Part shown: positions 5,459 to 53,200 of the stretch, in pieces
How positions within the stretch are numbered: position 1 is the first letter of the stretch
Layout of the letters: each line of letters begins with the position of its first letter
Translations under genes and position numbers: made by a program
The notes under the pieces: model-generated
Databases searched by the model: none
What the model was told of the DNA's origin: nothing
The model's input: the letters and a program-made list of their open reading frames with translations, nothing else
Assembly: GCA_965644295.1 (NCBI GenBank)
Contig: CBFFRP010000645.1
Coordinates: forward strand, 124,001-188,000
Reading direction: 5' to 3'
DNA: 64,000 nt
Source: Paraphysomonas bandaiensis
Lineage: Eukaryota; Protista; Chrysophyceae

Positions 5459-5490
<32 letters not shown>

Positions 5491-18288: not shown

Positions 18289-18900
18289 GTATGTATGTAT
18301 GTATGTATGTATGTATGTATGTATGTATGTATGTATGTATGTATGTATGTATGTATGTATGTATGTATGTATGTATGTATGTATGTATGTATGTATGTAT
18401 GTCTGTATGTATGTATGTATGTATGTATGTATGTATGTATGTATGTATGTATGTATGTATGTATGTATGTATGTATGTATGTATGTATGTCTGTATGTAT
18501 GTATGTATGTACATGTATGTATGTATGTATGTATGTATGTATGTATGTATGTATGTATGTATGTATGTATGTATGTATGTATGTATGTATGTATGTATGT
18601 ATGTATGTATGTATGTATGTATGTATGTATGTATGTATGTATGTATGTATGTATGTATGTATGTATGTATGTATGTATGTATGTATGTATGTATGTATGT
18701 ATGTATGTATGTATGTATGTATGTATGTATGTATGTATGTATGTATGTATGTATGTATGTATGTATGTATGTATATATGTATGTATGTATGTACTGTATG
18801 TATGTATGTATGTATGTATGTATGTATGTATGTATGTATGTATGTATGTATGTATGTATGTATGTATGTATGTATGTATGTATGTATGTATGTATGTACA
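18289..18900. repeat. (TATG)n microsatellite, about 0.6 kb
   Basis: Directly visible. Confidence 0.99.
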
Positions 18901-27024: not shown

Positions 27025-27883
27025 TTTGAACTGTTCGCACTGAATCCACTTTGCATAGTTGTGTTGTAATATATATCGTCAATGGCAGTAGTATGTACGT
27101 TGTTTTTTTACGTAATCTTGTGTTCTGTTCAGATAAATACCAATATGACGTCTACATTTGCTCGCTGTCGTGGCGACCTTTTACGACATAGAAATAATAT
27201 TTTTTTAAATGTATTTTTTTAAACTGCATCGACAGAGACCTTGTTTCATGAAATTGATATTTAACTGTGAAGCACGACTATATAACGATCAATCCCACAA
27301 ACCCAAGATATTACTTTCACTGTTGGAATTGGACATATCTGTAGAGCTAACTCTCACTACTTACATCTTAAACTTTCTATCAAGTTATGACATTGTGGAC
27401 GTTTGAACATATTTAACTGAACGATGAATAATGCATACAGTCTATCATACTCAATTATTAAATTGTAATACCTATCTCATATCGTATTTCACACTATCTA
27501 AGATAGCCACAATTCTATAACAGTCAATATCATTAGTTCGTAAAATAGGTGAAAGATAATCAACATTCAACCTAGTTAAATTGGTTGACTTTCCTAGTCA
27601 CTAATTTCGGTCAAAGTAATGTATGATTCAATATCTACATTTATTAAATTTATCCTATTCAACCTACTCATCGTAAACTGAATATATGAATTATTTAATG
27701 GCTAAATTTTCATCCCTGACTAGGTTTTGCTCTATATTTGGCGTGACTAGGAAACTTGATATAATATTGCAGTCAGGTAGCAGTTTAACGGCGTTGATAT
27801 AATATAAACTGCAGAGCAACTGACTCTACAAAATTTTATAAAAAGTAGAAGCAACTTTCACATGGGAAGTAGGACGACTTTCG

Positions 27884-30800: not shown

Positions 30801-33800
30801 ACCATCCCCTATAAATCCACGAGATTGCAACAAATATTATTCTTGTTGAATATACGGACTGTGTCGTCTTGTAAATTGCAGGGCACCGTTACACACCTGG
30901 TAACCACAGGGCAGCTGTCACATCATCAATATATAAATATGGAAACTTCTCTCGCGCCTCTCGAGGAGATATTATTTCAGAATCAATTCCAAATGCACGT
31001 GCTTTATTGGCCCTTATCTTTAATTGCGTCAATCTATCTGGACATGTGGCCAGCGTAAGGGATCCACAGGCCTTGTAGCCTGTAGATTGGTCTGTTTCTC
31101 TTTCAAGCTGCTGTAAGAACTGTGTTCCATACACTCCAGATAGCTTAGTTTCTGTCTCTGTATCTCTCAACTGACCAATAAGGCCGGCGGCATGCCTATG
31201 TGACAATACACAAGTTAAAACTATTATTGATTAGGAGCAGAGTAGTTTATATATCTATATAAGTATATCTCTGCATATATATGTCTCAATGTTTATGTAC
31301 CTAGTACACTATATATCTATGTATGTATATATGTATATATTACCAGTATATATATGTATATATATGCTTCTATATGCATACTACCAGGCACTATACCTAT
31401 ATACTACCAGTCTATTTATGTATATCCATATACCTATGTATGCATATATCTCTGTGAACACATGTAAGTATATATTACCAGGCTACATGCATGTATCTCT
31501 GTATGTATATCTGTGTATGTATGTATATATTACCAGTCTATACATGTATATCTCTCTATATCTGTGTATGTATGTATATATTACCAGGCTATACATGTAT
31601 ATCTCTCTATATCTGTATGTATGTATATACTACCAGTCTATACATGTATATCTCTCTATATCTGTGTATGTATGTATATATTACCAGGCTATACATGTAT
31701 ATCACTCTATACCTGTGTATGTATGTATATATTACCAGGCTATACATGTACATCACTCTATATCTGTGTATGTATGTATATATTACCAGGCTATACATGT
31801 ATATCTCTCTATATCTGTGTATGTATGTATATATTACCAGGCTATACATGTATATCTCTCTATATCTGTGTATGTATGTATATATTACCAGTCCACATGT
31901 ATATCTCTCTATATCTGTGTATGTATGTATATATTACCAGTCTATACATGTATATCTCTCGATATCTATGTATGTATGTATATGTATGTATGTATGTATG
32001 TATATGTATATATTACCAGGCTATACATGTATATCTCTCTATATCTGTGTATGTATGTATATATTACCAGGCTATACATGTATATCACTCTATATCTGTG
32101 TATGTATGTATATATTACCAGTCTATACATGTATATCTCTCTATATCTGTGTATGTATGTATATATTACCAGGCTATACATGTATATCTCTCTATATCTG
32201 TGTATGTATGTATATATTACCAGGCTATACATGTATATCTCTCTATATCTGTGTATGTATGTATATATTACCAGGCTATACATGTATATCTCTCTATATC
32301 TGTGTATGTATGTATATATTACCAGTCTACATGTATATCTCTCTATATCTGTGTATGTATGTATATATTACCAGGCTATACATGTATATCTCTCTATATC
32401 TGTGTATGTATGTATATATTACCAGGCTATACATGTATATCTCTCTATATCTGTGTATGTATGTATATATTACCAGGCTATACATGTATATCTCTCTATA
32501 TCTGTGTATGTATGTATATATTACCAGTCTACATGTATATCTCTCTATATCTGTGTATGTATGTATATATTACCAGTCTATACATGTATATCTCTCTATA
32601 TCTATGTATGTATCTATGTATGTATGTATGTATGTATGTATATGTATATATTACCAGGCTATACATGTATATCTCTCTATATCTGTGTATGTATGTATAT
32701 ATTACCAGGCTATATGCATGTATCTCTGTATGTATATCCGTGTATGTATGTATATATTACCAGTCTATACATGTATATCTCTCTATATCTGTGTATGTAT
32801 GTATATATTACCAGGCTATACATGTATATCTCTCTATATCTGTGTATGTATGTATATATTACCAGGCTATACATGTATATCTCTCTATATCTGTGTATGT
32901 ATGTATATATTACCAGTCTATACATGTATATCTCTCTATATCTGTGTATGTATGTATATATTACCAGGCTATACATGTATATCTCTCTATATCTGTGTAT
33001 GTATGTATATATTACCAGTCTATACATGTATATCTCTCTATATCTGTGTATGTATGTATATATTACCAGGCTATACATGTATATCTCTCTATATCTGTGT
33101 ATGTATGTATATATTACCAGTCTACATGTATATCTCTCTATATCTGTGTATGTATGTATATATTACCAGGCTATACATGTATATCTCTCTATATCTGTGT
33201 ATGTATGTATATATTACCAGGCTATACATGTATATCTCTCTATATCTGTGTATGTATGTATATATTACCAGGCTATACATGTATATCTCTCTATATCTGT
33301 GTATGTATGTATATATTACCAGTCTACATGTATATCTCTCTATATCTGTGTATGTATGTATATATTACCAGTCTATACATGTATATCTCTCTATATCTAT
33401 GTATGTATCTATGTATGTATGTATGTATGTATGTATATGTATATATTACCAGGCTATACATGTACATCACTCTATATCTGTGTATGTATGTATATATTAC
33501 CAGGCTATACATGTATATCTCTCTATATCTGTGTATGTATGTATATATTACCAGTCTATACATGTATATCTCTCTATATCTGTGTATGTATGTATATATT
33601 ACCAGGCTATACATGTATATCTCTCTATATCTGTGTATGTATGTATATATTACCAGTCTACATGTATATCTCTCTATATCTGTGTATGTATGTATATATT
33701 ACCAGGCTATACATGTATATCTCTCTATATCTGTGTATGTATGTATATATTACCAGGCTATACATGTATATCTCTCTATATCTGTGTATGTATGTATATA

Positions 33801-36207
33801 TTACCAGGCTATACATGTATATCTCTCTATATCTGTGTATGTATGTATATATTACCAGTCTACATGTATATCTCTCTATATCTGTGTATGTATGTATATA
33901 TTACCAGTCTATACATGTATATCTCTCTATATCTATGTATGTATCTATGTATGTATGTATGTATGTATGTATATGTATATATTACCAGGCTATACATGTA
34001 TATCTCTCTATATCTGTGTATGTATGTATATATTACCAGGCTATATGCATGTATCTCTGTATGTATATCCGTGTATGTAAGTATATATTACCAGTCTATA
34101 CATGTATATCTCTCTATATCTGTGTATGTATGTATATATTACCAGTCTATACATGTATATCTCTCTATATCTGTGTATGTATGTATATATTACCAGGCTA
34201 TACATGTATATCTCTCTATATCTGTATGTATGTATATACTACCAGTCTATACATGTATATCTCTCTATATCTGTGTATGTATGTATATATTACCAGGCTA
34301 TACATGTATATCACTCTATACCTGTGTATGTATGTATATATTACCAGGCTATACATGTACATCACTCTATATCTGTGTATGTATGTATATATTACCAGGC
34401 TATACATGTATATCTCTCTATATCTGTGTATGTATGTATATATTACCAGGCTATACATGTATATCTCTCTATATCTGTGTATGTATGTATATATTACCAG
34501 TCCACATGTATATCTCTCTATATCTGTGTATGTATGTATATATTACCAGTCTATACATGTATATCTCTCGATATCTATGTATGTATGTATATGTATGTAT
34601 GTATGTATGTATATGTATATATTACCAGGCTATACATGTATATCTCTCTATATCTGTGTATGTATGTATATATTACCAGGCTATACATGTATATCACTCT
34701 ATATCTGTGTATGTATGTATATATTACCAGGCTATACATGTATATCTCTCTATATCTGTGTATGTATGTATATATTACCAGGCTATACATGTATATCTCT
34801 CTATATCTGTGTATGTATGTATATATTACCAGGCTATACATGTATATCTCTCTATATCTGTGTATGTATGTATATATTACCAGGCTATACATGTATATCT
34901 CTCTATATCTGTGTATGTATGTATATATTACCAGTCTACATGTATATCTCTCTATATCTGTGTATGTATGTATATATTACCAGGCTATACATGTATATCT
35001 CTCTATATCTGTGTATGTATGTATATATTACCAGGCTATACATGTATATCTCTCTATATCTGTGTATGTATGTATATATTACCAGGCTATACATGTATAT
35101 CTCTCTATATCTGTGTATGTATGTATATATTACCAGTCCACATGTATATCTCTCTATATCTGTGTATGTATGTATATATTACCAGTCTATACATGTATAT
35201 CTCTCTATATCTATGTATGTATCTATGTATGTATGTATGTATGTATGTATATGTATATATTACCAGGCTATACATGTATATCTCTCTATATCTGTGTATG
35301 TATGTATATATTACCAGGCTATATGCATGTATCTCTGTATGTATATCCGTGTATGTATGTATATATTACCAGTCTATACATGTATATCTCTCTATATCTG
35401 TGTATGTATGTATATATTACCAGGCTATACATGTATATCTCTCTATATCTGTGTATGTATGTATATATTACCAGGCTATACATGTATATCTCTCTATATC
35501 TGTGTATGTATGTATATATTACCAGTCTATACATGTATATCTCTCTATATCTGTGTATGTATGTATATATTACCAGGCTATACATGTATATCTCTCTATA
35601 TCTGTGTATGTATGTATATATTACCAGTCTATACATGTATATCTCTCTATATCTGTGTATGTATGTATATATTACCAGGCTATACATGTATATCTCTCTA
35701 TATCTGTGTATGTATGTATATATTACCAGGCTATACATGTATATCACTCTATATCTGTGTATGTATGTATGTATATATTACCAGTCTATATGCATGTATA
35801 TCACTCTATATCTGTGTATGTATGTATATTACCAGGCTATACATGTATATCACTCTATATCTATGTATGTATGTATATATTACCAGTCTATATGCATGTA
35901 TATCACTCTATATCTATGTATGTATGCATATATTACCAGGTGGTCCCGCATGACAGTCTCCCTCTCTCCAATACAACCACATCCGTCCATCCTAATTTCG
36001 CAAGATGATAAGCTACACTACATCCAATAATACCACCCCTACAATTCCCATCATAATATTATGTATATGTATATATAGTTACCCGATTATACATACACGA
36101 GCATGAGATGGGAGAGAGTCTGTAGAGGATGAAAGATAAGAGATTACACCTCTATGTATAGGTGAGACTGTACGAATATATTTGGAGTGTTTTGAGAGAT
36201 GTATCAT
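27884..36207 (-). CDS. Dimethylglycine/sarcosine dehydrogenase-like FAD oxidoreductase with GcvT-type C-terminus, multi-exon
   Basis: Exon 1 (ATG 36207) has a transit-peptide-like leader, then [29 protein letters not shown]|[53 protein letters not shown]. Confidence 0.92.
31330..35936. repeat. 51-bp intronic minisatellite, about 90 copies, with a 2609-bp higher-order duplication
   Basis: Unit ttaccaggctatacatgtatatctctctatatctgtgtatgtatgtatata. Variant patterns recur at a 2609-bp offset (31607/34216, 31966/34575, 32710/35319). Fills intron 31196-35936. Confidence 0.97.
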
Positions 36208-36346
36208 TATATGGTAGGTATACTATGAGCACTCAACTGATAGATTGACTCGACGAGTTATATATACATATATATACATACAAACCCCACATAGAGCTAC
36301 ACACCCAGAATCTTACCATAGTATCTTACACAGGTACCATATACAG

Positions 36347-36838
36347 TATGTATGTATGTATGTATGTATGTATGTATGTATGTATGTATGTATGTATGTA
36401 TGTATGTATGTATGTATGTATGTATGTATGTATGTATGTATGTATGTATGTATGTATGTATGTATGTATGTATGTATGTATGTATGTATGTATGTATGTA
36501 TGTATGTATGTATGTATGTATGTATGTATGTATGTATGTATGTATGTATGTATGTATGCATGTATGTATGTATGTATGTATGTATGTATGTATGTATGTA
36601 TGTATGTATGTATGTATGTATGTATGTATGTATGTATGTATGTATGTATGTATGTATGTATGTATGTATGTATGTATGTATGTATGTATCTATGTATGTA
36701 TGCATGTATGTATGTATGTATGTATGTATGTATGTATGTATGTATGTATGTATGTATGTATGTATGTATGTATCTATGTATGTATGCATGTATGTATGTA
36801 TGTATGTATGTATGTATGTATGTACTCTGTATGTATGA
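36347..36838. repeat. (TATG)n microsatellite, about 0.5 kb
   Basis: Directly visible. Confidence 0.99.
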
Positions 36839-38524
36839 TGTGAAAACGTTATGGGTTTTCCTCATGTAAAAAACCTCTTCATGAAACCTATGTTTTCATG
36901 CAAAAGTCGCTACTTTTATATAAGAAATATGCCATTATTCAGCACTATAATCATTAATCTATACAAGTCATGAATGGATATGTATCGGCACCCTTTGTAT
37001 ATTTTTGTTCCAAGATGCCTCTAATATTGAGGCAAGAATTCTCTGTATTCCAGCCATAGTTTTATTGCAGTAATACAGAGTATATTTACTTCAATTAATT
37101 CCCGAAAATTGAGATGCTGGCTGCTCATATGTAATCCACCATACAACTACGATATCACCATCTTGTCATATATGAGCATGATAATAATCTCTACTATAAA
37201 AATAATTCTTGCAATGGATTCCACATCATGAATATGTACTACACACATGGATATTCCCTTTTTCCAGGTGATTATTCATGAATAACACAAAAATGACAGT
37301 CTATTAAATCAAAATGAAACACTTTGTTAACTATTAAAGTCACAATAGAGTCTTAAACAAACTAGTAGACTATTTCATAATATAATGAATACGTTCTTAT
37401 TATTAAGATTATTTATACGATGTATTTCAGATTGGTGTGTATTTTATTACCCCATCTGATGATTGATTTGTCATTATATGCGTATACGTCGATTATATTG
37501 TTTATACTGCGTCAAGCATTGATCTATTGAATACATTTTGTATGTAGTTACACCAACAATTCCGTAGTGGTATCCTCTCGAGTGGTTTCTTGGAATTTAC
37601 ATACAGTTATACATTATTATAAGACAGACATACAGTTCAATCATCTTAGTGTTAATATATTAAAGATTTATATGATTATATGATTATATTTCATCTAATC
37701 ATCTCAATATCTTCAGTGTTCATGTTATATGGTCAATCATGTTGTATGATCATGTATAGATGTGATGTGTAATGATTATGGATTAGAGATATAGCTAACA
37801 TGTCAATAGATTGTATTAAGAGTATGGATATACATGTATGTTATAACGTTGAGGTGTTAAAACTAATCATAGACTATATATAAGAGTTAGAGTCAGGTTC
37901 ATATGCTATAGGTAGGGCTAGAGAGGACTGGGTGTGGTTATGAGATGTGGGAACTCGCTCAAGAGAATAAAATTAGTGATGGAGGCCGAGCCGAAGCCGG
38001 CTTCGGCTAAAATATTCGGCCTGAACCGGCTCGGCTAAAGCCGGTTGGAATGTATACTGCTGTAGGATGTAGGACTACCCACCAATATACAGTGTATATA
38101 CTGTACGACAGTAATCATATAATACAGGACATATACATATATATACTGTATATATGTGGACAATGGACAATTCTGAATGTGTCGATGTCCTCCGACCTCA
38201 CGATTAACTGTTACTGGATACTGGCGATTTAAAGAAATAGCAAGTATAATCTATAATCTAATATAAACATACCAACAACTTAACTTCTGAACTCATTATG
38301 ATCAGCCCAATTTGTTTGTCCATGAATTCACCATCTTCTGAAGGTAGCGCTGTTGTGTTAGATTGTGGCACAGGTGGTTTGATTTTAGAAGGCGGTGATG
38401 AGAGTGTAACAAGCATTTGAAGAGCGTAACAGAAGTTGACATTATTTGGTAAGGCTTGATATTCTCAATTGACAAGATGAAATTATAAACATTACATGAT
38501 AAAGAACCTAAGTTGTATTCGATG

Positions 38525-39054: not shown

Positions 39055-40730
39055 TCACCATGTGATACATAATCTTAATATGTGCTTCGACTTCTTGTGA
39101 AACGCTGGGTTTTCGGCCAAATCCTGGGCACTCTGACTGTCGATGAAGAATGGTGCGGGTCTGATGAGCCTCAACTTATTCTCACCCGTCACCCCCCGAA
39201 CCCATAGCACTTCTTGGAGACCCGAGTAAATACACTGATACTCAGACTGCATGCTTGACGTTGCCACTGTCGTCTGCAATTTGGACTGCCAGACTATAGG
39301 CCCTCCCGCTGCAAACCCAACGTACCCCGACGTGGACTTCCTGGACAGCTGGTCTCCCGCCCAATCTGCGCAGAAAGCATATGGAAGTCGAACCGTCTGC
39401 TCCCATATTGAATCCCTTTGTCAATAGAGCCACGAATATATTGCCATACGTATGTTAATAACTTGCATACTTCAATATTCACCTCATTACTGAACCGAGA
39501 CAGTACTCTCCGACTGCATGCTTGACGTTGCCACTGTCGTCTGCAATTTGGACTGCCAGACTATAGGCCCTCCCGCTGCAAACCCAACGTACCCCGACGT
39601 GGACTTCCTGGACAGCTGGTCTCCCGCCCAATCTGCGTCAGAAAACATATGGAAGTCGAACCGTCTGCTCCCATATTGAATCTCTTTGTCAATAGAACCA
39701 CGAATATATTGCCATACATATGTTAATAGTTTGCATACTTCAATATTCACCTCATTACTGAACCGAGACAGTACTCCCATTGCATAGGCAATATCCGGCC
39801 TCGTGTTCATCGATAGATATAGTATTGCACCTATCAGCGGCTCAGCGGTCGATATGGGAAGTTATCTACTATAAGCTGTTCCTCCTCGGTATGCTCATGC
39901 CACGCCCCTTTTGCCACTAAATCTACATATTGCTTCCGCTGGTAGAGGACTCGTCCGTACCTTCCGCGGTGGCCCAAGGTTCTTTTCAAACTTTTCTAAG
40001 ATCTTAGCCGCATATAGGATTGGTCATGACGAATATACTCTGGCGTCCTTGTGACTCGAACATTCAGAAAATGTTCCATCTTGCCCATGTCCTTCATATC
40101 AAATCGGGCACACAGTTGAGCTTTAATATCCTTCACTATATTGACATCACGACCTAAAGCTAGGATATCATCCACATATATCATTAATAATACCAATTCA
40201 ACGCCCTTATACTGATAATACAAACACGGGTCTATTACACATGGTTTAAAATGCATAGATCGTATGAATTTATCCAATGTTTTCCACCACGACCGCGAGG
40301 AACTCCGAAGCCCGTATAACAACATCTTCAACTTAAAGCAGTACCCCTTAGGCAGCTGAAAGTACGGAGTTGCCTTCATATATACGTCCCCCTCTATATC
40401 TGCATATTGAAATGCGTTAGACACACCCAGTTGATGAATTACCATGTTCACCACGAAGGCTATGGATTAACAGTCGCACTGTTACCCCCATAATAACGGG
40501 AGCAAAATGGTTCGCCCAAGCACTCGACTGCTGTCCACAACCGATTGCTACAAGACGAGCCTTATATCGGCGGACCTCTCCCGCCTTATCGTACATCTTT
40601 CCATAGACGTACTTGGAGTGCAGTGGGACGACTCCGTCCGGTATACGAGTCACCTCCACGGTGTCTCGCTTCGCCAGACCCTCTCGCTCTGCTCGTCTCC
40701 ACTCCCTGTGCTCGGCACTCTCCAAGGGCT
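39055..40730 (-). pseudogene. Decayed Ty1/copia reverse transcriptase + RNase H
   Basis: YKARLVA, LYGLRSS, MIYVDDIL, TRPDIAYA, FSDADWAGD..RKSTSG, SSMQSEY, IDSQSA, KSKHI, spread over several frames (frameshifts). Confidence 0.92.
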
Positions 40731-41789
40731 TGTGACCACGTGGCATTTCACATGCCTCAGTCACGTGTCTATAGTAAGTGCAAAACTACTAACTACGGGA
40801 TGAAGACAGAGACGATAGAAGTATCAGAAACATATCATTATTACGCTACAGATTACTGAAGAACTAGCACTAGGACTGGAGGTACAATTTCCCATAATCT
40901 GCCAACAGCTCTTCGCCGGCCGCAACTGCCCGAGTGGTCTGCACCCAGACCACGTCCAAGCCGGACTCATCTACTACAAATTCGCAGTTGAAGCGCCAGC
41001 CAGCAGCATGGTCAGAAGGATACACCGTGTTTATATACCTACCATGATTATGAGGCACCCGGGCCAAATAAGCTTGGGACCCCAGCGGCCAAAGGTAACC
41101 CATGTCCCGAGTGTCCCGCTCCGCATCTATATAGAAGTCCTTAGCCATCTCAAGTATATATGCTCCCCAGCTGGGACGGGAGGTATACACTTCACCGCTG
41201 TAGAGGCAGAAACGCAGTCCTAGCTCTAAATCCTGTAAGGAGAATAAACCTTGCTGTTCAGGCTTATCGCCCTGAGGGTTGGTGGATCTGTAGTGGCAGA
41301 CATTGTTTATGCAGCAATGGATATGATGTATGTATCTGATGTGGACATTGGTTCTTAGTCTGAGATAGTAGATGTAGGAAAAGCATCATACGGTATGCTG
41401 CACACTCACATACATGTTGGTCCATTGTAATACAGTAGCAGTACTCTGAATACGCAGTATTCAACGGCTAATTTACAAACTGGCGAGTGTGGTGTGTGGT
41501 GTCATCGCGAGTGTGGTGTGTTGTGCTTGTTCTATGTTGCATTGCTTTACAGCTCAGTGTTTTGTTAAGTGTTGTTCTGTTTGTACACTAGTGTTCTGAC
41601 TTCACTGGAGGTGGGGTTTGCGCGGTGATTCTTGGAGGGAGTCACTAGTACAAGCTTGCAACGCTTGACATACTGTTTAGAGTAATAATCATCCTGTTCT
41701 CCTGCAATCAGACGTACATATAGCTCTGGTTAACTCATTGTGTTTGTTTCTGCTGCACAGCCTTGGTTATCAAACCTGGCTGTGTCATA
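40731..41789 (+). repeat. Gypsy 5' LTR (1059 bp)
   Basis: Direct repeat of 48283-49341; no differences noticed by eye and ORF translations are identical. Confidence 0.95.
40870..41385 (-). CDS. SET-domain protein encoded antisense within the 5' LTR (stop-to-stop frame; true start unresolved)
   Basis: Extending the listed 106-aa ORF upstream gives ...YRSTNPQGDKPEQQGLFSLQDLELGLRFCLYSGEVY...YIDA...GRYINT...NCEF...VWVQTTRAVAAGEELLADYGKLY, i.e. the SET motifs in canonical order. Confidence 0.8.
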   Translation of the reverse strand, partial: CFSYIYYLRLRTNVHIRYIHHIHCCINNVCHYRSTNPQGDKPEQQGLFSLQDLELGLRFCLYSGEVYTSRPSWGAYILEMAKDFYIDAERDTRDMGYLWPLGSQAYLARVPHNHGRYINTVYPSDHAAGWRFNCEFVVDESGLDVVWVQTTRAVAAGEELLADYGKLYLQS

Positions 41790-42316
41790 GTAATTAATTA
41801 CTGAAAAAAGCAGATCAGCGCTGATAGTAATTGTTACACATACAACTCATTTTGCAATATTTGCAACACTTGTTATTCTTGCACATTAGAATACTGAGCT
41901 TGGCCTTTATTAGCCTCCTCATATTCGAATAGTTCTTAGAGTCTATAGATTGCATACCAGTGCAAGCTTAGGAATTAAGGAGTGATATCTTGCAGTGTTT
42001 GAGAATACATATCCGTGAGCGCGGACTCCGTTAGACTGCGTCGTTAAGAGTGTACCTTGAACACTGCAACAAACTCAACATTTTGGAAAACTGCTCTTAT
42101 CGCATTGACAACTGACCGTCTGCGAAATGAGTGGATACCTCAATTATTGAGTGGGTGAGATAGACCTTGTAAGAGACTTGCAATACAATTTTATCGCATA
42201 GACAACTGACTGCCTGCGAAATACTTGTACAGCAATATCTACATAGTTTGATCTTGCGATAGCTCCAATAAACCTGAGCCCAAGCTGTCCTGTAATTAAT
42301 AAGACCGCAATTCAAA

Positions 42317-44119
42317 ATGTCTACTCCTAGTGGCAAAAGGACCAGCAAGAAGCCGTCCACTGCTCCACGGCGTCCTAAACCAGTGGTACAGGAGGACTCA
42401 CCAGATAAAATAGATGAAAGTCAATACGAAGAAGCGCCCATGATACCTTCACCTTCTGCCCCAGCATCCTCAGCAACCCAACAGATTCTGGACTCAGTAC
42501 AGGAGATCCAAGGCACCCTGGGACAAGTAGCCTTTGCGATATCCAACCTAGACAGTAGGGTACAAGCTCTGGAGAGTTCTAAGAGAGCAGATACACCTGA
42601 TTCATCAGACACCCAGAGTGATGACACACCTGATTCATTCAGCAGCAAGGGCAGTAAAGCAAATACCACACCCAGGGGAGTCACTAAGCGTGCTAAGAAA
42701 GACCGACCAAAACCCCGTTATTCCACTTTAGGAGATCTGGCTACATTCAGGAGATTGCCAGAGAAGAAAGAGCAACTGAGTGAGGAGAGCTCCGACTCAG
42801 AGCTTGAGGAAGAGGCAGAAGAACATTTGGGGCGTCTTGCCAGTGTTTTTGGAGAGAAACGTCCAGGAAAGTTCTTCCGGAATTTGAAACGCAGCGCCAA
42901 GGTGGCCCAAGCTAAGACTGTCAATATAACTAGGCTGGAGAAGAAGTGTCACGTCAGGATCGAGACATTCAAACTTGGTAGAGTTTCAAGGGCGATCAAG
43001 GAGATTCTGGATTTCCAAGAAGAGGAAGAAACAGAAGTCCGCATCCAGAAAGTTTTATCTAGAAACCTGAAGGATCACTTGCGTTCCGTCTATGATATTC
43101 AACACGCAGAATTAGCTAGCATGGACATATCTGACCTCATGAGAATCGTAGCCCTAGAGACGAAAGTTTTCAGCTGTGTTGGGTTTTACAACGAGCTGAA
43201 AGAATCTCTCAGCCATATGAAGGTCATGGAGTGGGACAATGTCAACGCTGTCAATTTTGAAGCCTTCTATTTTCAACAACTTCGTTTGATAGAATCCTTT
43301 AAAAGGATGTTGTCTATCATGTTGGAAAATGAAAGCAACAGGCGTTGGTGTCCACAGGCTGACGACAAGGAATACGGCCTTATTAGGCTATTTAAAACCC
43401 TGAACGACGTCACATATGTGAAATTTGTTCTAGGTTGTATTCCGAAGAAGAAGTTCGACTTTATGGAAGACTTCTTCAAACTATATACGGAGGTACTGTT
43501 AGACCATTACCAGATCACGATTGCTTATAAACAGTTGCCCTTCAAAGCAACCGTGCAACATCAGGCGAAGTATGAGGAATACATGAAGCGCAAGCGTGAA
43601 ATGTTTTCTAGACCTAAGTCTGGAGTGGCAAAGAATTCCACTAGCACCCACTCTTCTACCAGGTTATTTAACATGGAAGAGGAACGGGCTTCTTTTTCTT
43701 CCAATGAATTTTCTCATGATGAAGAAGATTTATGGGATGCCTATGGGGATACATGGAAAAGCAACAACCACAGTACCGATGTTCCTACTGGCGGCAAACC
43801 TAATGGCGAGCCAGCGACCGAAACTTCTGAAGAGAAAGATACATCCGACTCAGAAGGAGCTTTGCAAGCTATGGATGGCCAGAATCCATCTCATAAACCC
43901 AAACAAGAGAAGTATGGGTGCATGAGAAAAATCATGTATGGCAAGTGCGACAAGAGTGATTGTCGTTATAGCCATAATCCTAGAGCTCTCGCCAATACCG
44001 CTTCGGAATTGGCTGAGAAATCCCAAGCTTATTTGAAGACCACTTCTTCAACTTCGGGGTCTCAGGATAAACCTCCTGCTATTTTAAGGAGAGATCGCTT
44101 CGGCGACTCTCGTCCTTGA
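42317..44119 (+). CDS. gag: Gypsy Gag-like protein with C-terminal CCCH finger
   Basis: 600-aa ORF between 5' LTR and pol; CMRKIMYGKCDKSDCRYSH near the end. Confidence 0.85.
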   Translation: MSTPSGKRTSKKPSTAPRRPKPVVQEDSPDKIDESQYEEAPMIPSPSAPASSATQQILDSVQEIQGTLGQVAFAISNLDSRVQALESSKRADTPDSSDTQSDDTPDSFSSKGSKANTTPRGVTKRAKKDRPKPRYSTLGDLATFRRLPEKKEQLSEESSDSELEEEAEEHLGRLASVFGEKRPGKFFRNLKRSAKVAQAKTVNITRLEKKCHVRIETFKLGRVSRAIKEILDFQEEEETEVRIQKVLSRNLKDHLRSVYDIQHAELASMDISDLMRIVALETKVFSCVGFYNELKESLSHMKVMEWDNVNAVNFEAFYFQQLRLIESFKRMLSIMLENESNRRWCPQADDKEYGLIRLFKTLNDVTYVKFVLGCIPKKKFDFMEDFFKLYTEVLLDHYQITIAYKQLPFKATVQHQAKYEEYMKRKREMFSRPKSGVAKNSTSTHSSTRLFNMEEERASFSSNEFSHDEEDLWDAYGDTWKSNNHSTDVPTGGKPNGEPATETSEEKDTSDSEGALQAMDGQNPSHKPKQEKYGCMRKIMYGKCDKSDCRYSHNPRALANTASELAEKSQAYLKTTSSTSGSQDKPPAILRRDRFGDSRP

Positions 44120-44134
44120 GATAAGGAGGTTAAC

Positions 44135-47100
44135 ATGATTGAGGACCTAGAAGAACATGTGATCAGTGTTTGTGATGGGAATGATGATTGTGATTATCTC
44201 CCAGAGGCTAAAACATTGAATACTACTTCTTCAAAGGTCCATTTCAAGGATGGAGCTAAGCTGTATGCTTCATATCCTTCAGCCAAGAAATTTTCATCAG
44301 CACATACTGTAGGTAGAGTAATTATAGACAAGAAGTTCGGAGTGGAAGAATTAGTGAAAGTTTTATGTGACACAGGAGCCCTATCCGCTAACTACGTAGC
44401 ACGTGATCTTGTGGATAGATTGCGTACCAAGCTAGAACCTAGCAGGTTCTACAAGGTCAAACACCGTGTGGTTTTGGCAGACAGTAGAACCGTAAAGGAT
44501 CTTGACGAAGGGGTTCGATTGAACTTAGTGTTTACCGATCCCAAGAGTCACACTTACCAGTACACTGGTGAGTTCATCGTGATCGACATGTCATCTAATG
44601 ACATTATTTTGGGACTACCAGCCCTCACTGGGAAGCTATACCCTTTCATGTGTGCTGTCATGGAGCAGGCCCATGAGAATCATCTCGAAGATTCGGCTCA
44701 AGGGAACCATAATTTGAGTGCCCTACAAAATGAGGACATGGAATCCAGAGAGGAACACCGACGTCCCTGGAGTAAAGCGAATGATGCTATCGCTCCAGAA
44801 GATAACGAGACTGAGTTACCCGTTCAATTCAAAGATGCTTTGACATTCCTCGGAAAGTCTAGAGAGGAAGCTCTTAACGACTACTATGAACAAATAGAAA
44901 CTCACGTCAGTCAGGAGATGAAACAAGAGACCAACATTATGGATCTCTTATCTTCCAAAGCTGAGAAGGTATTCGTGCCTGATGAGTGGACAGGAGTCCG
45001 AGGTGTTGACCCTTTGACTCTTAAGTGGAAAGAAACTTTACCTGAAAGAATGAAACCCAGAGCCAGGCCGATCAACCCTAAGCTCTGGGAAGCATCCGAA
45101 AAGGAGTTCAGGAGACTATGTGGTTATTTTTACCAGAAGAGCAGATCTCCTTGGGCTTCATGCTTGGTGGTTGCTCCCAAGGCTACTCCACCTTATATCC
45201 GATTCTGCGGGGATTATGTTAACATCAACAAGCACATGCAAGTGGGTAATTATACAATTCCCAATGTCAAGCATGAATTGGACAAGATCATCAATTTCCC
45301 ATTGTATATGGATATCGACTTGACCAACGCTTTCCATCAGATACCTCTAGCGGAAGAAACATCAGAGAGGCTTTCTATCCAGACGCCATGGGGCCAATAT
45401 GCGCCAAAGTTCATGCCAGAAGGTATTGCGCCGGCTACTGGAATTCTGCAAGAGGTAGTCAGGGAAATATTTGAAGATTTTTCTGACTGGGCCATTGTAA
45501 TATTTGACAACATGTTGATATTGGCCAACGACCCTCAAGATGCGTATCAGAAATTTGAGAAAGTGATTGACAGATGCATCGAGAGGAATCTCAAACTGAA
45601 AATGCCAAAGAGTTGGCTTGGATTTAGAAAAGTAGACTTCTTCGGATACGTATGCAGACACAAATCCTATGAAGTCAATCCTGAGAAGAAGGAAGCCCTA
45701 GGCAAAATCCCAATGCCTACCAACACCAAACAAGCGAGGTCTCTGCTTGGCAAGGGCGTGTTCTTTTCCAGTTTTACCCCTAGATATTCAGACTTGGTTG
45801 CTCATCTCACAGATTTGACCAAATCGAAATTCAATTGGGACAAGACTACGTGGCGGCACGATTATGAGGCTGAATATCGTCGCTTCATAAAAGGCCTGCA
45901 AGATTCCTGCGAATTGTTCTACCCAGACTACAATTTGGAGTGGACACTGCGTACTGACGCTAGTGAGCTAGGAATCGGCTCGGTGCTTCTGCAGAAAAAG
46001 ATTCTCGCAGATGGAACAGAGCAGTTGCAACCCATTGCCTTCCTATCAAAGAAGTTTTCAGCTCAGGCTCAGAAATGGGCTACGATAGAGCAAGAAGCTT
46101 ATGGTATTTACTACAGTGTCAAGCACTTAGCGTACTATTTGATTGGGAAGCAGTTCACTATAGAGACTGACCACAATAATCTCTTGTGGATGGAGTCGTC
46201 TGAAGTACCTAAGATCACAAGATGGAGAATTTTCTTGCAATCTTTCAACTTCAGCATTAAACACATATCGGGTGCCAAGAATTGGTTAGCCGATTGGTTA
46301 TCTCGGGAGCATCAAGTTGCGGCGTTGTCCGGTATATTCTTAGATGAAGACTATGCCGATGCCTACTTCCTTGGAGAGGACTGCACTGAGGATGAATTTT
46401 TTAACTTCTTGGGCAATTTTATGAACCCAGAAGACAGGGAAGTATCTCCTCATGCGCAAAGTTCAGTCACTCCCGAGGATGCCTTGCAACAAGTACATAA
46501 TGCCCGAGTTGGACATCTCGGTGGGCGAGCCACTTGGATTCGACTTAATAAGCAATTCCCCGGCCATGGAATTCCTTACAAAGTAGTCGAAGACTTCATT
46601 GCGAAGTGTCCAAACTGTGTTAAGACTAGATTGGCGATGAAAGAAGCGCTGATCCCTATAGTCCGAAACCTTAAGCCTCCGAGCGCTCGGAGTGCTATTG
46701 GTATTGATGCGGTAGAAATCACACCCCATGGTGCTGATGGATACACGCACATTAATGTCGTAGTCAACCTGTTCACCAAGTTAGTTTATCTTGAGCCAGT
46801 CAAAGGAGTGACTGCCCTCAACTTGGCAAACACGGTATGGAAGTATTGGAGTTACTACGGACACACTGATCTTATCATCTCAGATCAGGGTCCTGACCTA
46901 ACTTCCGATCTTTTCAAACAACTGACTGAATATATGGGCGTCCGACACACCTTCAGCATAGCCAACAGGCATGCTAATGGTTGTGAACGCATCATCGGTG
47001 AGGTGGTCCGACATTTGCGTGCCCTAGTATATGAAAACAGCAAGCGTGTAGAACGAAAGGATGTTTTTGAGGATCCCAGCTGGATACCCAGCGCTCAATA

Positions 47101-48100
47101 CATTCTGAATTCAGAAGTCTCATCCGAGACGGGGTACTCACCCTTTGAGCTCACTTTTGGCTCTAATGATCTGGAATATTTAACTATGAATATACAGACT
47201 TTGCCTGAGCGTGCACACGCCAGACTGACTGCTCTTAATGAACAGTTAGAAGGCCTACGGGCGGCTTCCAAAACTTACCAGCAGCAGTTAGCGAGTGAAC
47301 GTGCTGGGGAGGGAGTTCACCCGGACAAGCAGAACCGATATCAACCGGGCGACTTCATTTTATTTGACAAAGGCGCCAAGGTTCATCCCAAGATGTCACA
47401 TCGATACATGGGACCTTTTGTTGTTAAGACCCAGTACAAAAATGACATTGATTGTCAGCACCTTGCTACAGGGCAAGTGGTACGTGTTTCAGTGACAGAC
47501 GTCAAACTGTTTCCAGGTGATAGAGAAACTGCGTACAGCATGGCTCTACGAGACCAGGATCAGCATGTCATTGACAAGATTCTCTACTATCGGGGTGACA
47601 GAGAGTCACGCTCCACTTTGACTTTTACTGTGAGATTTCAGGATGGTGATGTCAGAGAAGTGCCTTATAGCAAGGACCTTTTTGACTCAGTGCCTTACGC
47701 GGACTTTTGTTCCAGCAAACGGTACCTCTACCACCTGATTTATCCAGCGGAGGGTGCCAAGAAATATATCTCGGACATCCGACGCCAGTCTATCACTCAG
47801 TTCAAACCCGGTGACCATGCATATGTTGACCTACGCATTTATGGCGACGTATGGTACGACGGACTGCAGTTACCAGACTCCCACTTACTGACCTATGTAG
47901 CTCCGATCCAGTTCACACACTGGTATCATCGAAGCTCTAGGAGAGTATTATCCGTCAAGGATCTTCTCACTCTCCGCACTTACCGTTATGACAACTACCT
48001 CGTGCATTGTTTCGTTCACCCTGAACTAGACACTAGCACTATGGTACTCGTCGACAAGGACTTGGCTACACGCTACCCTCAAGTCCTTGAGTCCGCTTAG
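44135..48100 (+). CDS. pol: Gypsy Pol: protease, RT, RNase H, integrase, chromodomain-like C-terminus
   Basis: LCDTGA; PWAS..RFCGDY, DLTNAFHQI, MPEG, IFDN; TDAS, EQEAY, ETDH, ADWLSR; H..H..CPNC, IDAV, SDQG, CER; GPF; HVIDKILYYRG..FTVRF. Confidence 0.97.
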   Translation: MIEDLEEHVISVCDGNDDCDYLPEAKTLNTTSSKVHFKDGAKLYASYPSAKKFSSAHTVGRVIIDKKFGVEELVKVLCDTGALSANYVARDLVDRLRTKLEPSRFYKVKHRVVLADSRTVKDLDEGVRLNLVFTDPKSHTYQYTGEFIVIDMSSNDIILGLPALTGKLYPFMCAVMEQAHENHLEDSAQGNHNLSALQNEDMESREEHRRPWSKANDAIAPEDNETELPVQFKDALTFLGKSREEALNDYYEQIETHVSQEMKQETNIMDLLSSKAEKVFVPDEWTGVRGVDPLTLKWKETLPERMKPRARPINPKLWEASEKEFRRLCGYFYQKSRSPWASCLVVAPKATPPYIRFCGDYVNINKHMQVGNYTIPNVKHELDKIINFPLYMDIDLTNAFHQIPLAEETSERLSIQTPWGQYAPKFMPEGIAPATGILQEVVREIFEDFSDWAIVIFDNMLILANDPQDAYQKFEKVIDRCIERNLKLKMPKSWLGFRKVDFFGYVCRHKSYEVNPEKKEALGKIPMPTNTKQARSLLGKGVFFSSFTPRYSDLVAHLTDLTKSKFNWDKTTWRHDYEAEYRRFIKGLQDSCELFYPDYNLEWTLRTDASELGIGSVLLQKKILADGTEQLQPIAFLSKKFSAQAQKWATIEQEAYGIYYSVKHLAYYLIGKQFTIETDHNNLLWMESSEVPKITRWRIFLQSFNFSIKHISGAKNWLADWLSREHQVAALSGIFLDEDYADAYFLGEDCTEDEFFNFLGNFMNPEDREVSPHAQSSVTPEDALQQVHNARVGHLGGRATWIRLNKQFPGHGIPYKVVEDFIAKCPNCVKTRLAMKEALIPIVRNLKPPSARSAIGIDAVEITPHGADGYTHINVVVNLFTKLVYLEPVKGVTALNLANTVWKYWSYYGHTDLIISDQGPDLTSDLFKQLTEYMGVRHTFSIANRHANGCERIIGEVVRHLRALVYENSKRVERKDVFEDPSWIPSAQYILNSEVSSETGYSPFELTFGSNDLEYLTMNIQTLPERAHARLTALNEQLEGLRAASKTYQQQLASERAGEGVHPDKQNRYQPGDFILFDKGAKVHPKMSHRYMGPFVVKTQYKNDIDCQHLATGQVVRVSVTDVKLFPGDRETAYSMALRDQDQHVIDKILYYRGDRESRSTLTFTVRFQDGDVREVPYSKDLFDSVPYADFCSSKRYLYHLIYPAEGAKKYISDIRRQSITQFKPGDHAYVDLRIYGDVWYDGLQLPDSHLLTYVAPIQFTHWYHRSSRRVLSVKDLLTLRTYRYDNYLVHCFVHPELDTSTMVLVDKDLATRYPQVLESA

Positions 48101-48282
48101 AGCACGGGACCAATCAACTTACACGTGACCTTCCAACTCCAACGCTCCTCTGCTGCACCTTCGTTTTGATGGCTAATTTTTAGTTCCGTTGAAATTTGTG
48201 GGCCGCAGAGTGACGCCCGTCTTCATCATTTCGCATAATACTTATATCAAACAAAAAAAAAAAAAAAAGGGAGGCGGGGCAA

Positions 48283-49341
48283 TGTGACCACGTGGCATTT
48301 CACATGCCTCAGTCACGTGTCTATAGTAAGTGCAAAACTACTAACTACGGGATGAAGACAGAGACGATAGAAGTATCAGAAACATATCATTATTACGCTA
48401 CAGATTACTGAAGAACTAGCACTAGGACTGGAGGTACAATTTCCCATAATCTGCCAACAGCTCTTCGCCGGCCGCAACTGCCCGAGTGGTCTGCACCCAG
48501 ACCACGTCCAAGCCGGACTCATCTACTACAAATTCGCAGTTGAAGCGCCAGCCAGCAGCATGGTCAGAAGGATACACCGTGTTTATATACCTACCATGAT
48601 TATGAGGCACCCGGGCCAAATAAGCTTGGGACCCCAGCGGCCAAAGGTAACCCATGTCCCGAGTGTCCCGCTCCGCATCTATATAGAAGTCCTTAGCCAT
48701 CTCAAGTATATATGCTCCCCAGCTGGGACGGGAGGTATACACTTCACCGCTGTAGAGGCAGAAACGCAGTCCTAGCTCTAAATCCTGTAAGGAGAATAAA
48801 CCTTGCTGTTCAGGCTTATCGCCCTGAGGGTTGGTGGATCTGTAGTGGCAGACATTGTTTATGCAGCAATGGATATGATGTATGTATCTGATGTGGACAT
48901 TGGTTCTTAGTCTGAGATAGTAGATGTAGGAAAAGCATCATACGGTATGCTGCACACTCACATACATGTTGGTCCATTGTAATACAGTAGCAGTACTCTG
49001 AATACGCAGTATTCAACGGCTAATTTACAAACTGGCGAGTGTGGTGTGTGGTGTCATCGCGAGTGTGGTGTGTTGTGCTTGTTCTATGTTGCATTGCTTT
49101 ACAGCTCAGTGTTTTGTTAAGTGTTGTTCTGTTTGTACACTAGTGTTCTGACTTCACTGGAGGTGGGGTTTGCGCGGTGATTCTTGGAGGGAGTCACTAG
49201 TACAAGCTTGCAACGCTTGACATACTGTTTAGAGTAATAATCATCCTGTTCTCCTGCAATCAGACGTACATATAGCTCTGGTTAACTCATTGTGTTTGTT
49301 TCTGCTGCACAGCCTTGGTTATCAAACCTGGCTGTGTCATA
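48283..49341 (+). repeat. Gypsy 3' LTR (1059 bp), preceded by an A-rich polypurine tract at about 48253-48282
   Basis: Repeat of the 5' LTR; preceded by a long A run then gggaggcggggcaa. Confidence 0.95.
48422..48937 (-). CDS. Second copy of the LTR-borne SET-domain frame
   Basis: Same translation as 40870-41385. Confidence 0.8.
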   Translation of the reverse strand, partial: CFSYIYYLRLRTNVHIRYIHHIHCCINNVCHYRSTNPQGDKPEQQGLFSLQDLELGLRFCLYSGEVYTSRPSWGAYILEMAKDFYIDAERDTRDMGYLWPLGSQAYLARVPHNHGRYINTVYPSDHAAGWRFNCEFVVDESGLDVVWVQTTRAVAAGEELLADYGKLYLQS

Positions 49342-50075
49342 GGCTCACGATGTGTCTGAGGCACTGTTGACTCTTCCGCTGACATCCACACTGAGTCTGC
49401 CTCCTGCAATAGGTCACTCACATCACCCTCATCACTCAAATGATGGATTTGTCCTAACACTGACACATTCGTTACTGTCCTTGGAGTTCTTGCACGTTTG
49501 TCAGTAGCTCTGGCCCTAACCACCCTCTGCGCAAGATCCTCTGTCATCTTCTTGATGTCAGCAATGTGATTAGGAGTTTTATCCTCCACTTGAAACTGGT
49601 TACCAGTAACCACAACGACCAGTATCCCACAATAAGCCCCTTTCTTATCAGCACTCTGTTGGTCTTGTATAGCAGACCACCGTCCTCATGCTTTCCGATA
49701 AGATACTCAAACTCACCCGGTTGGTGAGCCTTGGGGTATATAGCCACTTGAGCCTCCTCCAGCTCTCTATAATAATCTTTTGACCTCTCAGGTACCGATT
49801 CATCAAACAATACATGTACAGAGTGTACTACGGTGTCCCCCACTAGCACCTTGTATCCTTTTCGATCAGCTGGATACCCTATGAAGTAACCTGTAATTGC
49901 TTTGTCCTCCCAGTCCTTTCTCCTGTCGGCCTTGGGTGTTAGCACGTATGCTTTACACTCCCATTTCCGTAGCCACAATAGGCTAGGAACGCTCCCCCCT
50001 GGGACACACTCATATGGAGACATCCATTCTTGCCACGTCCGAGTTGGCATTCGTCGCACAATATGACTGTGTACA
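49342..50075 (-). pseudogene. Decayed copia integrase C-terminal region and linker (upstream part of the interrupted element; 5' portion missing)
   Basis: SPYE, LRKWECKAYVL, KAITGYFIGY, KGYKV, HVLFDE are typical post-integrase copia motifs; frameshifted. Confidence 0.85.
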
Positions 50076-50262
50076 CCCATGGACAAAGGCAAGTGATGTC
50101 ATTGCACCAGAGGATGTTATGTCTCCATCTGCTCATGGTAATCTCGGAGAGCTTCCTCACGAGACTTCCCTAAGAATGCTAAAGCATCCCTAAACTGAGC
50201 TGGCAGTTCAGCTCCTCATCCACCGGTATAATAACATCACTTGCTTTTGTCCATGGGTTATA
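50076..50262 (-). pseudogene. Fragment of a related gypsy pol (protease-RT linker) with a short inverted duplicate
   Basis: Minus strand reads PWTKASDVIIP..ELPAQFRDALAFLGKSREEALRDYHEQMET, matching Pol PWSKANDAIAP..ELPVQFKDALTFLGKSREEALNDYYEQIET (about 44765-44905). Plus strand 50076-50114 reads PWTKASDVIAPED. Confidence 0.85.
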
Positions 50263-50267: not shown

Positions 50268-53200
50268 CAACCATCACGACAAGTGCTGACAGTACGGGTT
50301 ATCCCATTCATGGCCTATCTCTCGCAATATGCCCACGACCATACCTATGAAACAATACATACCATTATAAACACATGCACGCAAACATATATAACCCAAA
50401 CCACAAAATAATAATACATACATGGCACACAACTATAGCATCAGACTAGGGTTATTTAAGACTATCATCATATTCGAAAATCGATTGAAACGTCCTTGAA
50501 TAAGTATCATGTGCTACGATGATTGGTATGCCATGCCCACAACTACACCACATTACATAGACACAACATATATCCATACAGGTACACATACCGGATGACC
50601 ACACAATCAATGTGCGGTAGCTCATAATCAACCATCACGACAAGTGCTGACAGTACGGGTTATCCCATTCATGGCCTATCTCTCGCAATATGCCCACGAC
50701 CATACCTATGAAACAATACATACCATTATAAACACATGCACGCAAACATATATAACCCAAACCACAAAATAATAATACATACATGGCACACAACTATAGC
50801 ATCAGACTAGGGTTATTTAAGACTATCATCATATTCGAAAATCGATTGAAACGTCCTTGAATAAGTATCATGTGCTACGATGATTGGTATGCCATGCCCA
50901 CAACTACACCACATTACATAGACACAACAGATATCCATACAGGTACACATACCGGATGACCACACAATCAATGTGCGGTAGCTCATAATCAACCATCACG
51001 ACAAGTGCTGACAGTACGGGTTATCCCATTCATGGCCTATCTCTCGCAATATGCCCACGACCATACCTATGAAACAATACATACCATTATAAACACATGC
51101 ACGCAAACATATATAACCCAAACCACAAAATAATAATACATACATGGCACACAACTATAGCATCAGACTAGGGTTATTTAAGACTATCATCATATTCGAA
51201 AATCGATTGAAACGTCCTTGAATAAGTATCATGTGCTACGATGATTGGTATGCCATGCCCACAACTACACCACATTACATAGACACAACAGATATCCATA
51301 CAGGTACACATACCGGATGACCACACAATCAATGTGCGGTAGCTCATAATCAACCATCACGACAAGTGCTGACAGTACGGGTTATCCCATTCATGGCCTA
51401 TCTCTCGCAATATGCCCACGACCATACCTATGAAACAATACATACCATTATAAACACATGCACGCAAACATATATAACCCAAACCACAAAATAATAATAC
51501 ATACATGGCACACAACTATAGCATCAGACTAGGGTTATTTAAGACTATCATCATATTCGAAAATCGATTGAAACGTCCTTGAATAAGTATCATGTGCTAC
51601 GATGATTGGTATGCCATGCCCACAACTACACCACATTACATAGACACAACATATATCCATACAGGTACACATACCGGATGACCACACAATCAATGTGCGG
51701 TAGCTCATAATCAACCATCACGACAAGTGCTGACAGTACGGGTTATCCCATTCATGGCCTATCTCTCGCAATATGCCCACGACCATACCTATGAAATAAC
51801 ACATACCATTATAAACACATGCACGCAAACATATAAAACCCAAACCACAAAATAATAATACATACATGGCACACAACTATAGCATCAGACTAGGGTTATT
51901 TAAGACTATCATCATATTCGAAAATCGATTGAAACGTCCTTGAATAAGTATCATGTGCTACGATAATTGGTATGCCATGCCCACAACTACACCACATTAC
52001 ATAGACACAACATATATCCATACAGGTACACATACCGGATGACCACACAATCAATGTGCGGTAGCTCATAATCAACCATCACGACAAGTGCTGACAGTAC
52101 GGGTTATCCCATTCATGGCCTATCTCTCGCAATATGCCCACGACCATACCTATGAAACAATACATACCATTATAAACACATGCACGCAAACATATATAAC
52201 CCAAACCACAAAATAATAATACATACATGGCACACAACTATAGCATCAGACTAGGGTTATTTAAGACTATCATCATATTCGAAAATCGATTGAAACGTCC
52301 TTGAATAAGTATCATGTGCTACGATGATTGGTATGCCATGCCCACAACTACACCACATTACATAGACACAACATATATCCATACAGGTACACATACCGGA
52401 TGACCACACAATCAATGTGCGGTAGCTCATAATCAACCATCACGACAAGTGCTGACAGTACGGGTTATCCCATTCATGGCCTATCTCTCGCAATATGCCC
52501 ACGACCATACCTATGAAACAATACATACCATTATAAACACATGCACGCAAACATATAAAACCCAAACCACAAAATAATAATACATACATGGCACACAACT
52601 ATAGCATCAGACTAGGGTTATTTAAGACTATCATCATATTCGAAAATCGATTGAAACGTCCTTGAATAAGTATCATGTGCTACGATGATTGGTATGCCAT
52701 GCCCACAACTACACCACATTACATAGACACAACATATATCCATACAGGTACACATACCGGATGACCACACAATCAATGTGCGGTAGCTCATAATCAACCA
52801 TCACGACAAGTGCTGACAGTACGGGTTATCCCATTCATGGCCTATCTCTCGCAATATGCCCACGACCATACCTATGAAACAATACATACCATTATAAACA
52901 CATGCACGCAAACATATAAAACCCAAACCACAAAATAATAATACATACATGGCACACAACTATAGCATCAGACTAGGGTTATTTAAGACTATCATCATAT
53001 TCGAAAATCGATTGAAACGTCCTTGAATAAGTATCATGTGCTACGATGATTGGTATGCCATGCCCACAACTACACCACATTACATAGACACAACATATAT
53101 CCATACAGGTACACATACCGGATGACCACACAATCAATGTGCGGTAACTCATAATCAACCATCACGACAAGTGCTGACAGTACGGGTTATCCCATTCATG

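Follow-up and report, generated by a model that had tools for sequence, protein, structure and literature searches.

The long terminal repeats (LTRs) of retrotransposons are usually regarded as non-coding regulatory DNA. The locus described here raises the question of whether such a repeat can also house a protein-coding gene, for the initial annotation of the window (the whole stretch of DNA analysed, 64,000 nucleotides long) proposed that a gypsy retrotransposon carries an antisense SET-domain gene inside both of its LTRs. The answer has two parts. The gene proved to be conserved in the LTRs of an entire element clade, whereas the copy in the window does not work, having suffered a 301-bp deletion. 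The reading that we favor overall, and consider quite probable, is that the SET gene is a selected component of these LTRs throughout the clade and is dead in the window, with the LTR proposed to serve as its expression unit and the product proposed to act on chromatin in trans.

The host element and its SET reading frame

The host element is a full-length Ty3/gypsy retrotransposon on the plus strand (40731-49341), recognized by two LTRs, a target-site duplication, a polypurine tract and the order RT-RNase H-integrase. Its 5' LTR (40731-41789, plus strand; 1059 bp as read) begins with TGTGACC and ends with GTGTCATA, and the 3' LTR (48283-49341, plus strand) has the same sequence at 100% identity. 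The direct repeats of the element span 1060 nt at 100% identity, and the limits of the LTRs were set by reading their ends. The 4-bp target-site duplication is GGCT (40727-40730 and 49342-49345), and the polypurine tract (48253-48282, plus strand), which passes from an A-run into a G-rich stretch, adjoins the 3' LTR. Between the LTRs lie a gag-like open reading frame of 600 aa (42317-44119, plus strand) and a pol frame of 1321 aa that encodes RT, RNase H and integrase (44135-48100, plus strand). The gag product has weak matches to CCCH zinc fingers and no CCHC knuckle. The two frames are in register and separated by a single stop codon (44117-44135), an arrangement that suggests expression of gag-pol by stop-codon readthrough rather than by frameshifting. 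Read by eye for a primer-binding site, the sequence that follows position 41789 has no obvious complement to a tRNA 3' end, and Rfam and tRNA scans across the window gave no matches. The element is very young: its LTRs do not differ from each other, and both gag and pol are intact.

The gypsy element sits within a minus-strand Ty1/Copia element, between a domain of the Copia integrase side (49544-50092, minus strand) and the Copia RT (RVT_2 match at 39996-40454, minus strand). A 268-bp tandem duplication occupies 39241-39776, and just beyond this nest of elements is a 361-bp satellite (50268-63846; about 36 copies at 99% identity) that may be centromeric or heterochromatic. Elsewhere in the window, long tetranucleotide arrays of the (ATAC)n type and a minisatellite whose 51-bp unit is repeated about 87 times (5332-6789, 18288-18906, 36346-36841 and 31462-35939) give rise to spurious long open reading frames in several frames. 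Host genes with few introns occupy the region 3468-29578; they include genes for an FHA protein, a Methyltransf_16 lysine methyltransferase (9287-10186), a PH-kinase-EF-hand protein (10812-13400) and a CHASE-domain hybrid histidine kinase (24580-27024).

The proposed SET gene had been recognized as a stop-free frame on the minus strand of the 5' LTR (41385-40870), repeated in the 3' LTR (48937-48422). Both frames exist; they are identical, with 171 codons and a stop, and each lies wholly inside its LTR, the limits of which are fixed by the identical repeats and the target-site duplication. The SET motifs that had been quoted are all present and in the order given, far beyond what chance would produce. 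As had also been pointed out, the list of open reading frames displays only the C-terminal part (106 codons, 40870-41190), no in-frame ATG stands upstream of the GLF motif, and in this frame the NH motif has T where H is canonical. The SET-domain core proper is shorter than the stop-free frame. It extends over 137 codons and a stop (40870-41283 in the 5' LTR and, with the same sequence, 48422-48835 in the 3' LTR, both on the minus strand) and represents the C-terminal remainder of a 244-aa gene; over these 137 aa it is 98.5% identical to the 244-aa relatives described below. Upstream of the core the frame stays open to 41385 across what was formerly 5'-UTR sequence.

A disabled copy in a conserved family

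The lack of a start codon is accounted for by comparison with 99%-identical relatives that encode 244 aa, from which both window LTRs differ by the absence of 301 bp. The deletion junction (41280-41285, minus strand; 48832-48837 in the 3' LTR) has a 3-nt CCA microhomology. The ancestral start codon is retained (41301-41303, minus strand; 48853-48855 in the 3' LTR), and the same ATG opens the 244-aa frame in four related contigs (L048-L051). Some 100 codons that followed codon 7 are lost with the deletion, namely those of a basic, Cys-containing N-terminal region, and the frame is shifted, so that translation from the retained ATG leaves the SET frame after 7 codons and stops after 25. Thus the in-frame ATG is missing because of the deletion, and the frame of the core was extended by chance into the former 5' UTR. 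An uninterrupted frame from start to SET is absent from both window LTRs and intact, at 244 aa, in the relatives. Three of the latter (L048-L050) represent the same element as that in the window, with 99.2-99.5% DNA identity, a gag of 600 aa (98-99% identical) and a pol of 1321 aa (99.8% identical). Furthermore, the exact 92-aa C-terminal piece of the window frame falls in a 90%-identity cluster of 76 proteins, and 8 of the 15 members listed for that cluster are 244 aa long. Judged by these comparisons, the two SET copies of the window are dead derivatives.

The deletion is recent, yet older than the last transposition, since the core differs from that of L049 at only three synonymous and two non-synonymous positions and the two LTRs are identical. 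It fits better with an origin at the CCA microhomology than with splicing of a sense-strand transcript, in that GT..AG boundaries occur in none of the four junction registers (0/4). The same deletion is present in a metagenome contig that is 99.9% identical to the window (L053), and further deletion variants were found (L052 and P0224). An intron that would join an upstream ATG (41425) to the SET frame through GT..AG combinations was also considered, and was dropped because the 99%-identical relatives have a contiguous 244-aa frame and the window a plain 301-bp deletion. The peptide that begins at ATG 41425 resembles part of the protein of another relative (L001), a likeness weighed together with the intron. 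The frame opened by this ATG is a 53-codon upstream open reading frame of the SET 5' leader (41267-41425, minus strand), about 120 nt upstream of the SET start, and is likewise found in the intact 99%-identical relatives.

Could the deleted copy still yield something useful, either 92 aa from an internal ATG at 41148 or a frameshift product from the retained ATG? The core has gained no stop codon and has accumulated only the few changes just mentioned, and the deletion variant has transposed, as the identical LTRs attest, and recurs in L053. The absence of decay is explained by youth, given LTRs that are 100% identical, and the 92-aa form would lack the GxG and Y-x-G strands, which make up half of the cofactor pocket. 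A residual product from the window copy is thus very unlikely.

Outside the window the gene has a different history. Related contigs (given here as L-numbers) were collected by scanning metagenome contigs with a seven-sequence alignment and by context look-ups. At least six diverged lineages, with pol 46-88% identical to that of the window, carry a homologous SET gene of 237-329 aa at a common site, antisense in U3, between the LTR end and polypurine tract on one side and the R/U5 side on the other. The gene lies antisense and directly 3' of pol in a group with pol 84-88% and SET 55% identical to the window (L054, L056, L057 and L060), in L003 (pol 63%, SET 45%), in L005 and L006 (pol 52-64%, SET 32-33%) and in L062 (pol 46-57%, SET 36%). 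Intact frames have 244 aa in L048-L051, 260 in L001, 237 in L002, 245 in L054, 276 in L003, 312 in L005-7 and 329 in L062. In L003, L006 and L054, the LTR end (TACTATAG..GGTCACA) and then the polypurine tract intervene between the SET stop and the pol stop, which places SET inside U3. The same LTR end follows SET in L001, L011 and L044. In L007, L011 and L051 the LTR end is followed by DNA that is not a polypurine tract, and these outer flanks identify 5' or solo LTRs at other loci. The suggestion that solo LTRs would keep the gene is consistent with this finding, as LTR copies with non-internal flanks, whether 5' or solo, do retain SET. The metagenome contigs, at about 8 kb, are collapsed assemblies and do not distinguish which of the LTRs of one copy is intact. 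Two of the contigs are probably chimeric at their ends, judging from translated strings typical of a Nextera adapter (L006, 1-470 and 7900-7987; L007, 2009-2060).

The gene appears to have descended with the element rather than to have been captured repeatedly, in that the lineages fall into one order of pairwise identity whether the pol C-terminus or SET is compared. SET evolves much faster than pol, yet stays intact; between L054 and the window pol is 84% identical and SET 55%. Taken across these lineages, the contigs argue that an antisense SET gene in the LTR is a conserved hallmark of this entire clade of gypsy elements in marine protists. The family also extends beyond this clade. Contig L009 (3634-10354) has a homologue (9587-10354, 35% identical) directly 3' of Helitron-type open reading frames and on the same strand; those frames encode DUF6570, Helitron_like_N and a PIF1 helicase. 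At least two classes of transposable element thus carry the SET family.

The frame could alternatively be a passively captured fragment of a host gene, without a role and decaying in the LTR, much as one might conclude from the truncated and frameshifted window copy and from the other deletion variants. The comparison of lineages contradicts this explanation already, and we regard it as extremely improbable. Intact full-length frames occupy the same LTR site in lineages that share only 46-88% pol identity with the window, while the LTR DNA outside the frame cannot be aligned from one lineage to another, save for the terminus and one block. Synonymous sites are saturated between lineages while non-synonymous divergence (pN) is 0.2-0.45; in the comparison of the window with L001, pS is 0.85 (saturated) and pN 0.20. 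Where the ratio could be measured, dN/dS is 0.13 at a dS of 1.1 (L004 versus L013) and 0.12 (L044 versus L046). Near-identical copies gave 0.06-0.15 (L005-7) and 0-0.2 (L048-L051, except for one three-difference pair at 0.62), values that rest on 2-9 differences per pair. The SET frame therefore shows signs of purifying selection across the clade. A test of selection had been suggested at the outset, and it gave a dN/dS of about 0.1 in the measurable comparisons and intact frames in the family, with the LTR copies of the window disrupted.

The protein searches give no sign of a parent host gene either. An exhaustive HMMER search of 1.84 billion representatives returned 96 clusters, of which 25 reach E<=1e-10; the strongest match has E 4e-56. 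All 96 consist of small proteins (about 140-430 aa); in the aligned members the SET-like region reaches almost to the C-terminus and is preceded by a conserved N-terminal region with a K/R-rich stretch. No longer cellular homologue occurs among these clusters, and in the public data no member bears a name beyond "hypothetical protein". Searches of word-indexed proteins, whether queried by the 138-aa core or by the full-length profile, added almost nothing.

Fold, expression and proposed action

The assignment to the SET domain had been made from motifs, and both a profile check against PF00856 and a structure prediction bear it out. The window frame scores 23.7 bits (E 6.5e-5) against the Pfam SET gathering score of 22.4, a value that the 244-aa relative only just equals, which makes this lineage a marginal one for the Pfam model. 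Across the family the match is general: Pfam SET is matched by 48/48 aligned members (best E 1.1e-13). AlphaFold gave an unusable model from the single sequence (pLDDT 37), and with the 48-sequence alignment modelled a SET fold at pLDDT 87.1 and pTM 0.78. Foldseek gave this model 205 PDB hits at E<=1e-3; the SET proteins SET8/KMT5A, MLL1, LegAS4 and NSD were at the top, with TM 0.5-0.6, and EZH2 was returned as well, all five at probability 1.0. Comparison of the family profile with PDB sequences likewise gave SET8/KMT5A as the best match (E about 1e-6), in an alignment that pairs the GxG, Y-x-G, R-Y-x-N and E-L-L-x-D-Y-G motifs. The N-terminal region of about 110 aa has no match in Pfam or the PDB.

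The catalytic motifs are preserved unevenly. Motif I (G-L/V-F-A/S) and motif II (Y-S/V-G-E) are conserved, and both are kept in the window core. In motif IV, E126 and Y131 are invariant in the 48 sequences. Motif III retains an invariant Asn, and the canonical His of N-H-(S)-C-x-P-N is absent from all 48 aligned members, its place being taken by T, S or G; about 12 inserted residues separate the Asn-His part from the F-N-C part. Catalysis is plausible, since the fold and most of the pocket motifs are present, and is not assured, because of the family-wide replacement of this His and the insertion in motif III.

These same two features are the chief reasons to consider that the fold has no enzyme activity and that the protein instead binds histone tails or a host methyltransferase complex, or serves as a decoy for them. 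PR-domain proteins include weak or inactive members, and half of the aligned family (24/48) also matches the PR-domain model PF21549. Catalytically inactive SET proteins that still regulate chromatin have been described and provide a precedent (PMC12886896). Against such a role, the motif III Asn, the Tyr of Y-x-G and the Tyr of E-L-L-x-D-Y-G are invariant or nearly so, beyond what maintenance of a fold needs, and the conserved residues align with SET8 residues that were mutated in the Y245F and Y334F structures. We consider the non-enzymatic role unlikely, and yet the main rival to a methyltransferase.

Evidence for expression comes from a paralogue. A GCV_T-like host gene in the window (27679-29578, minus strand), with one intron of about 121 nt, is 99.9-100% identical to a cDNA contig (L047) from JGI sample 3300017004, labelled mmetsp, and by this match the sample is from the same organism as the window. 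The same sample contains a 915-nt contig (L002) that ends in a poly(A) run and encodes a complete family member of 237 aa, 54% identical to the window core; its genomic LTR was not recovered. At least one paralogue in this organism is thus a self-contained polyadenylated mRNA of about 0.9 kb. An antisense transcript had been among the things to look for, and the positive result is limited to this 54%-identical paralogue. By homology, the paralogue mRNA would both start and end within an LTR. A TAATAATGA(T) motif lies about 15 nt ahead of the poly(A) run in L002, and this poly(A)-signal-like motif recurs downstream of the SET stop codon in both the window and L054, at sites well within the LTR. 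The window version, TAATAATGAT (40834-40843, minus strand; 48386-48395 in the 3' LTR), is about 30 nt past the SET stop and is a candidate for the SET poly(A) signal. On the other side of the gene, between the SET start and the R/U5 side, a 46-nt non-coding block (41457-41502, with a 3' LTR copy at 49009-49054) is 96% identical to the otherwise diverged LTR of L001, and could be the core of a divergent promoter.

In the expression scheme that we propose, the SET transcript would begin about 100-150 nt upstream of the SET ATG, next to the conserved 46-nt block, this block may act as a divergent promoter common to SET and to the element's own transcript, and the SET mRNA would end inside the LTR. 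With both ends of the transcript within the LTR, each LTR, be it 5', 3' or solo, would function as an independent unit of SET expression. Less certainly, the basic N-terminal region may target the protein to the nucleus, where it may methylate lysines on histone tails or on another chromatin protein in trans; the structural neighbors of the model span H4K20, H3K4, H3K36 and H3K27 enzymes. Chromatin around copies of the element would be shaped as a result, most plausibly in such a way that LTRs are kept permissive or copy number is tuned. The commonness of deletion derivatives (the window copy, L052, L053 and P0224) and the intact gag and pol of the window element argue that SET is dispensable in cis for transposition. 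This dispensability fits a product that acts in trans, and with such a product SET-less copies like that of the window would still transpose.

Stated in full, the proposal is that the gypsy clade, abundant in ocean protists, and with it at least one Helitron, carry a histone lysine methyltransferase gene of their own, expressed from a divergent promoter in every LTR, solo LTRs included, and that the enzyme marks the elements' own copies or new insertion sites in trans, against host silencing or for control of copy number. We offer this extended version tentatively, as possible rather than probable.

Comparison with known systems

Histone lysine methylation is the main currency of transposon silencing, and if the LTR-encoded protein is active, it would provide a clean natural case of a retrotransposon with its own chromatin writer. 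Residence in U3 doubles the gene dose with each insertion and would let a solo LTR keep the expression unit. The organisms that bear these elements are plentiful in marine metagenomes, those of Tara Oceans among them, and a culture from MMETSP exists. The interest of the SET family is high and that of the dead copy in the window is low.

The closest parallels among transposable elements are of several kinds. Helentron and proto-Helentron rolling-circle transposons carry SET genes (Thomas et al. 2014, PMC4067079), and the Helentron SET of Phytophthora, a stramenopile, is likewise a small stand-alone accessory frame on a mobile element. Compared by description, the Helentron is a DNA transposon and keeps SET in the body of the element, whereas the family described here belongs to an LTR retrotransposon and lies antisense inside the LTR. 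Plant LTR retrotransposons of the Retand/Tat lineage have additional open reading frames, including antisense ones (PMC7264820, PMC11963269). These too are lineage-conserved additions to gag and pol, in many cases antisense and close to the 3' end, but they are apparently internal, between pol and the 3' LTR, and none is a SET gene, whereas the SET frame is inside the LTR, distal to the polypurine tract. Given their internal location, the plant frames are present once per element and absent from solo LTRs.

Capture of chromatin readers and writers by transposable elements is also seen in chromoviruses, SETMAR, DNMT-bearing retrotransposons and SET-TE fusions, and SET is among the domains of the fusion gene models (Grau-Bove et al., 10.1101/2021.11.30.470311). 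The fusions are in frame with the proteins of the element in one gene model, whereas the LTR SET is a separate antisense gene, and for that reason screens for domain co-occurrence would miss it. Standard annotation of transposable elements shares this blind spot for separate antisense genes in LTRs.

The position of the gene has a parallel in a retrovirus. The sag gene of MMTV encodes a superantigen in U3 and is expressed in the sense direction as a spliced mRNA from viral or LTR promoters. It is likewise an accessory protein gene that is duplicated in both LTRs by virtue of lying in U3. The differences are that sag is a sense gene for a superantigen, whereas the LTR SET is antisense, with its own predicted termination signal and the fold of a chromatin-type enzyme.

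At the level of the protein, the best profile and structural match is SET8/KMT5A, an H4K20 monomethyltransferase. Motifs I, II and IV align, while motif III and the N-terminal region differ, and at 22-23% identity in the structural alignment orthology is not implied. Viral SET proteins, such as vSET of chloroviruses and those of giant viruses, are similarly minimal SET domains encoded by genomic parasites. The fold resembles the SETs of Bodo saltans virus, Medusavirus and phaeoviruses at TM 0.5-0.6, and the viral proteins are no closer to the LTR family than are cellular SET8 or MLL. Chlorovirus vSET is a minimal protein of about 120 aa that consists of the SET core alone, whereas the LTR family comprises proteins of 237-329 aa that bear an additional conserved N-terminal region, about 110 aa long, and lack the NH His.

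The literature searched contains no SET gene, nor any other chromatin writer, housed inside an LTR. This agrees with the initial annotation in its statement that no LTR-encoded SET system had been described, a statement that needs the addition that SET genes borne by transposable elements were known. What appears to be new is accordingly the location of a SET gene within the LTR itself; SET genes in Helentrons and in SET-TE fusions are the known systems beside which it now takes its place.
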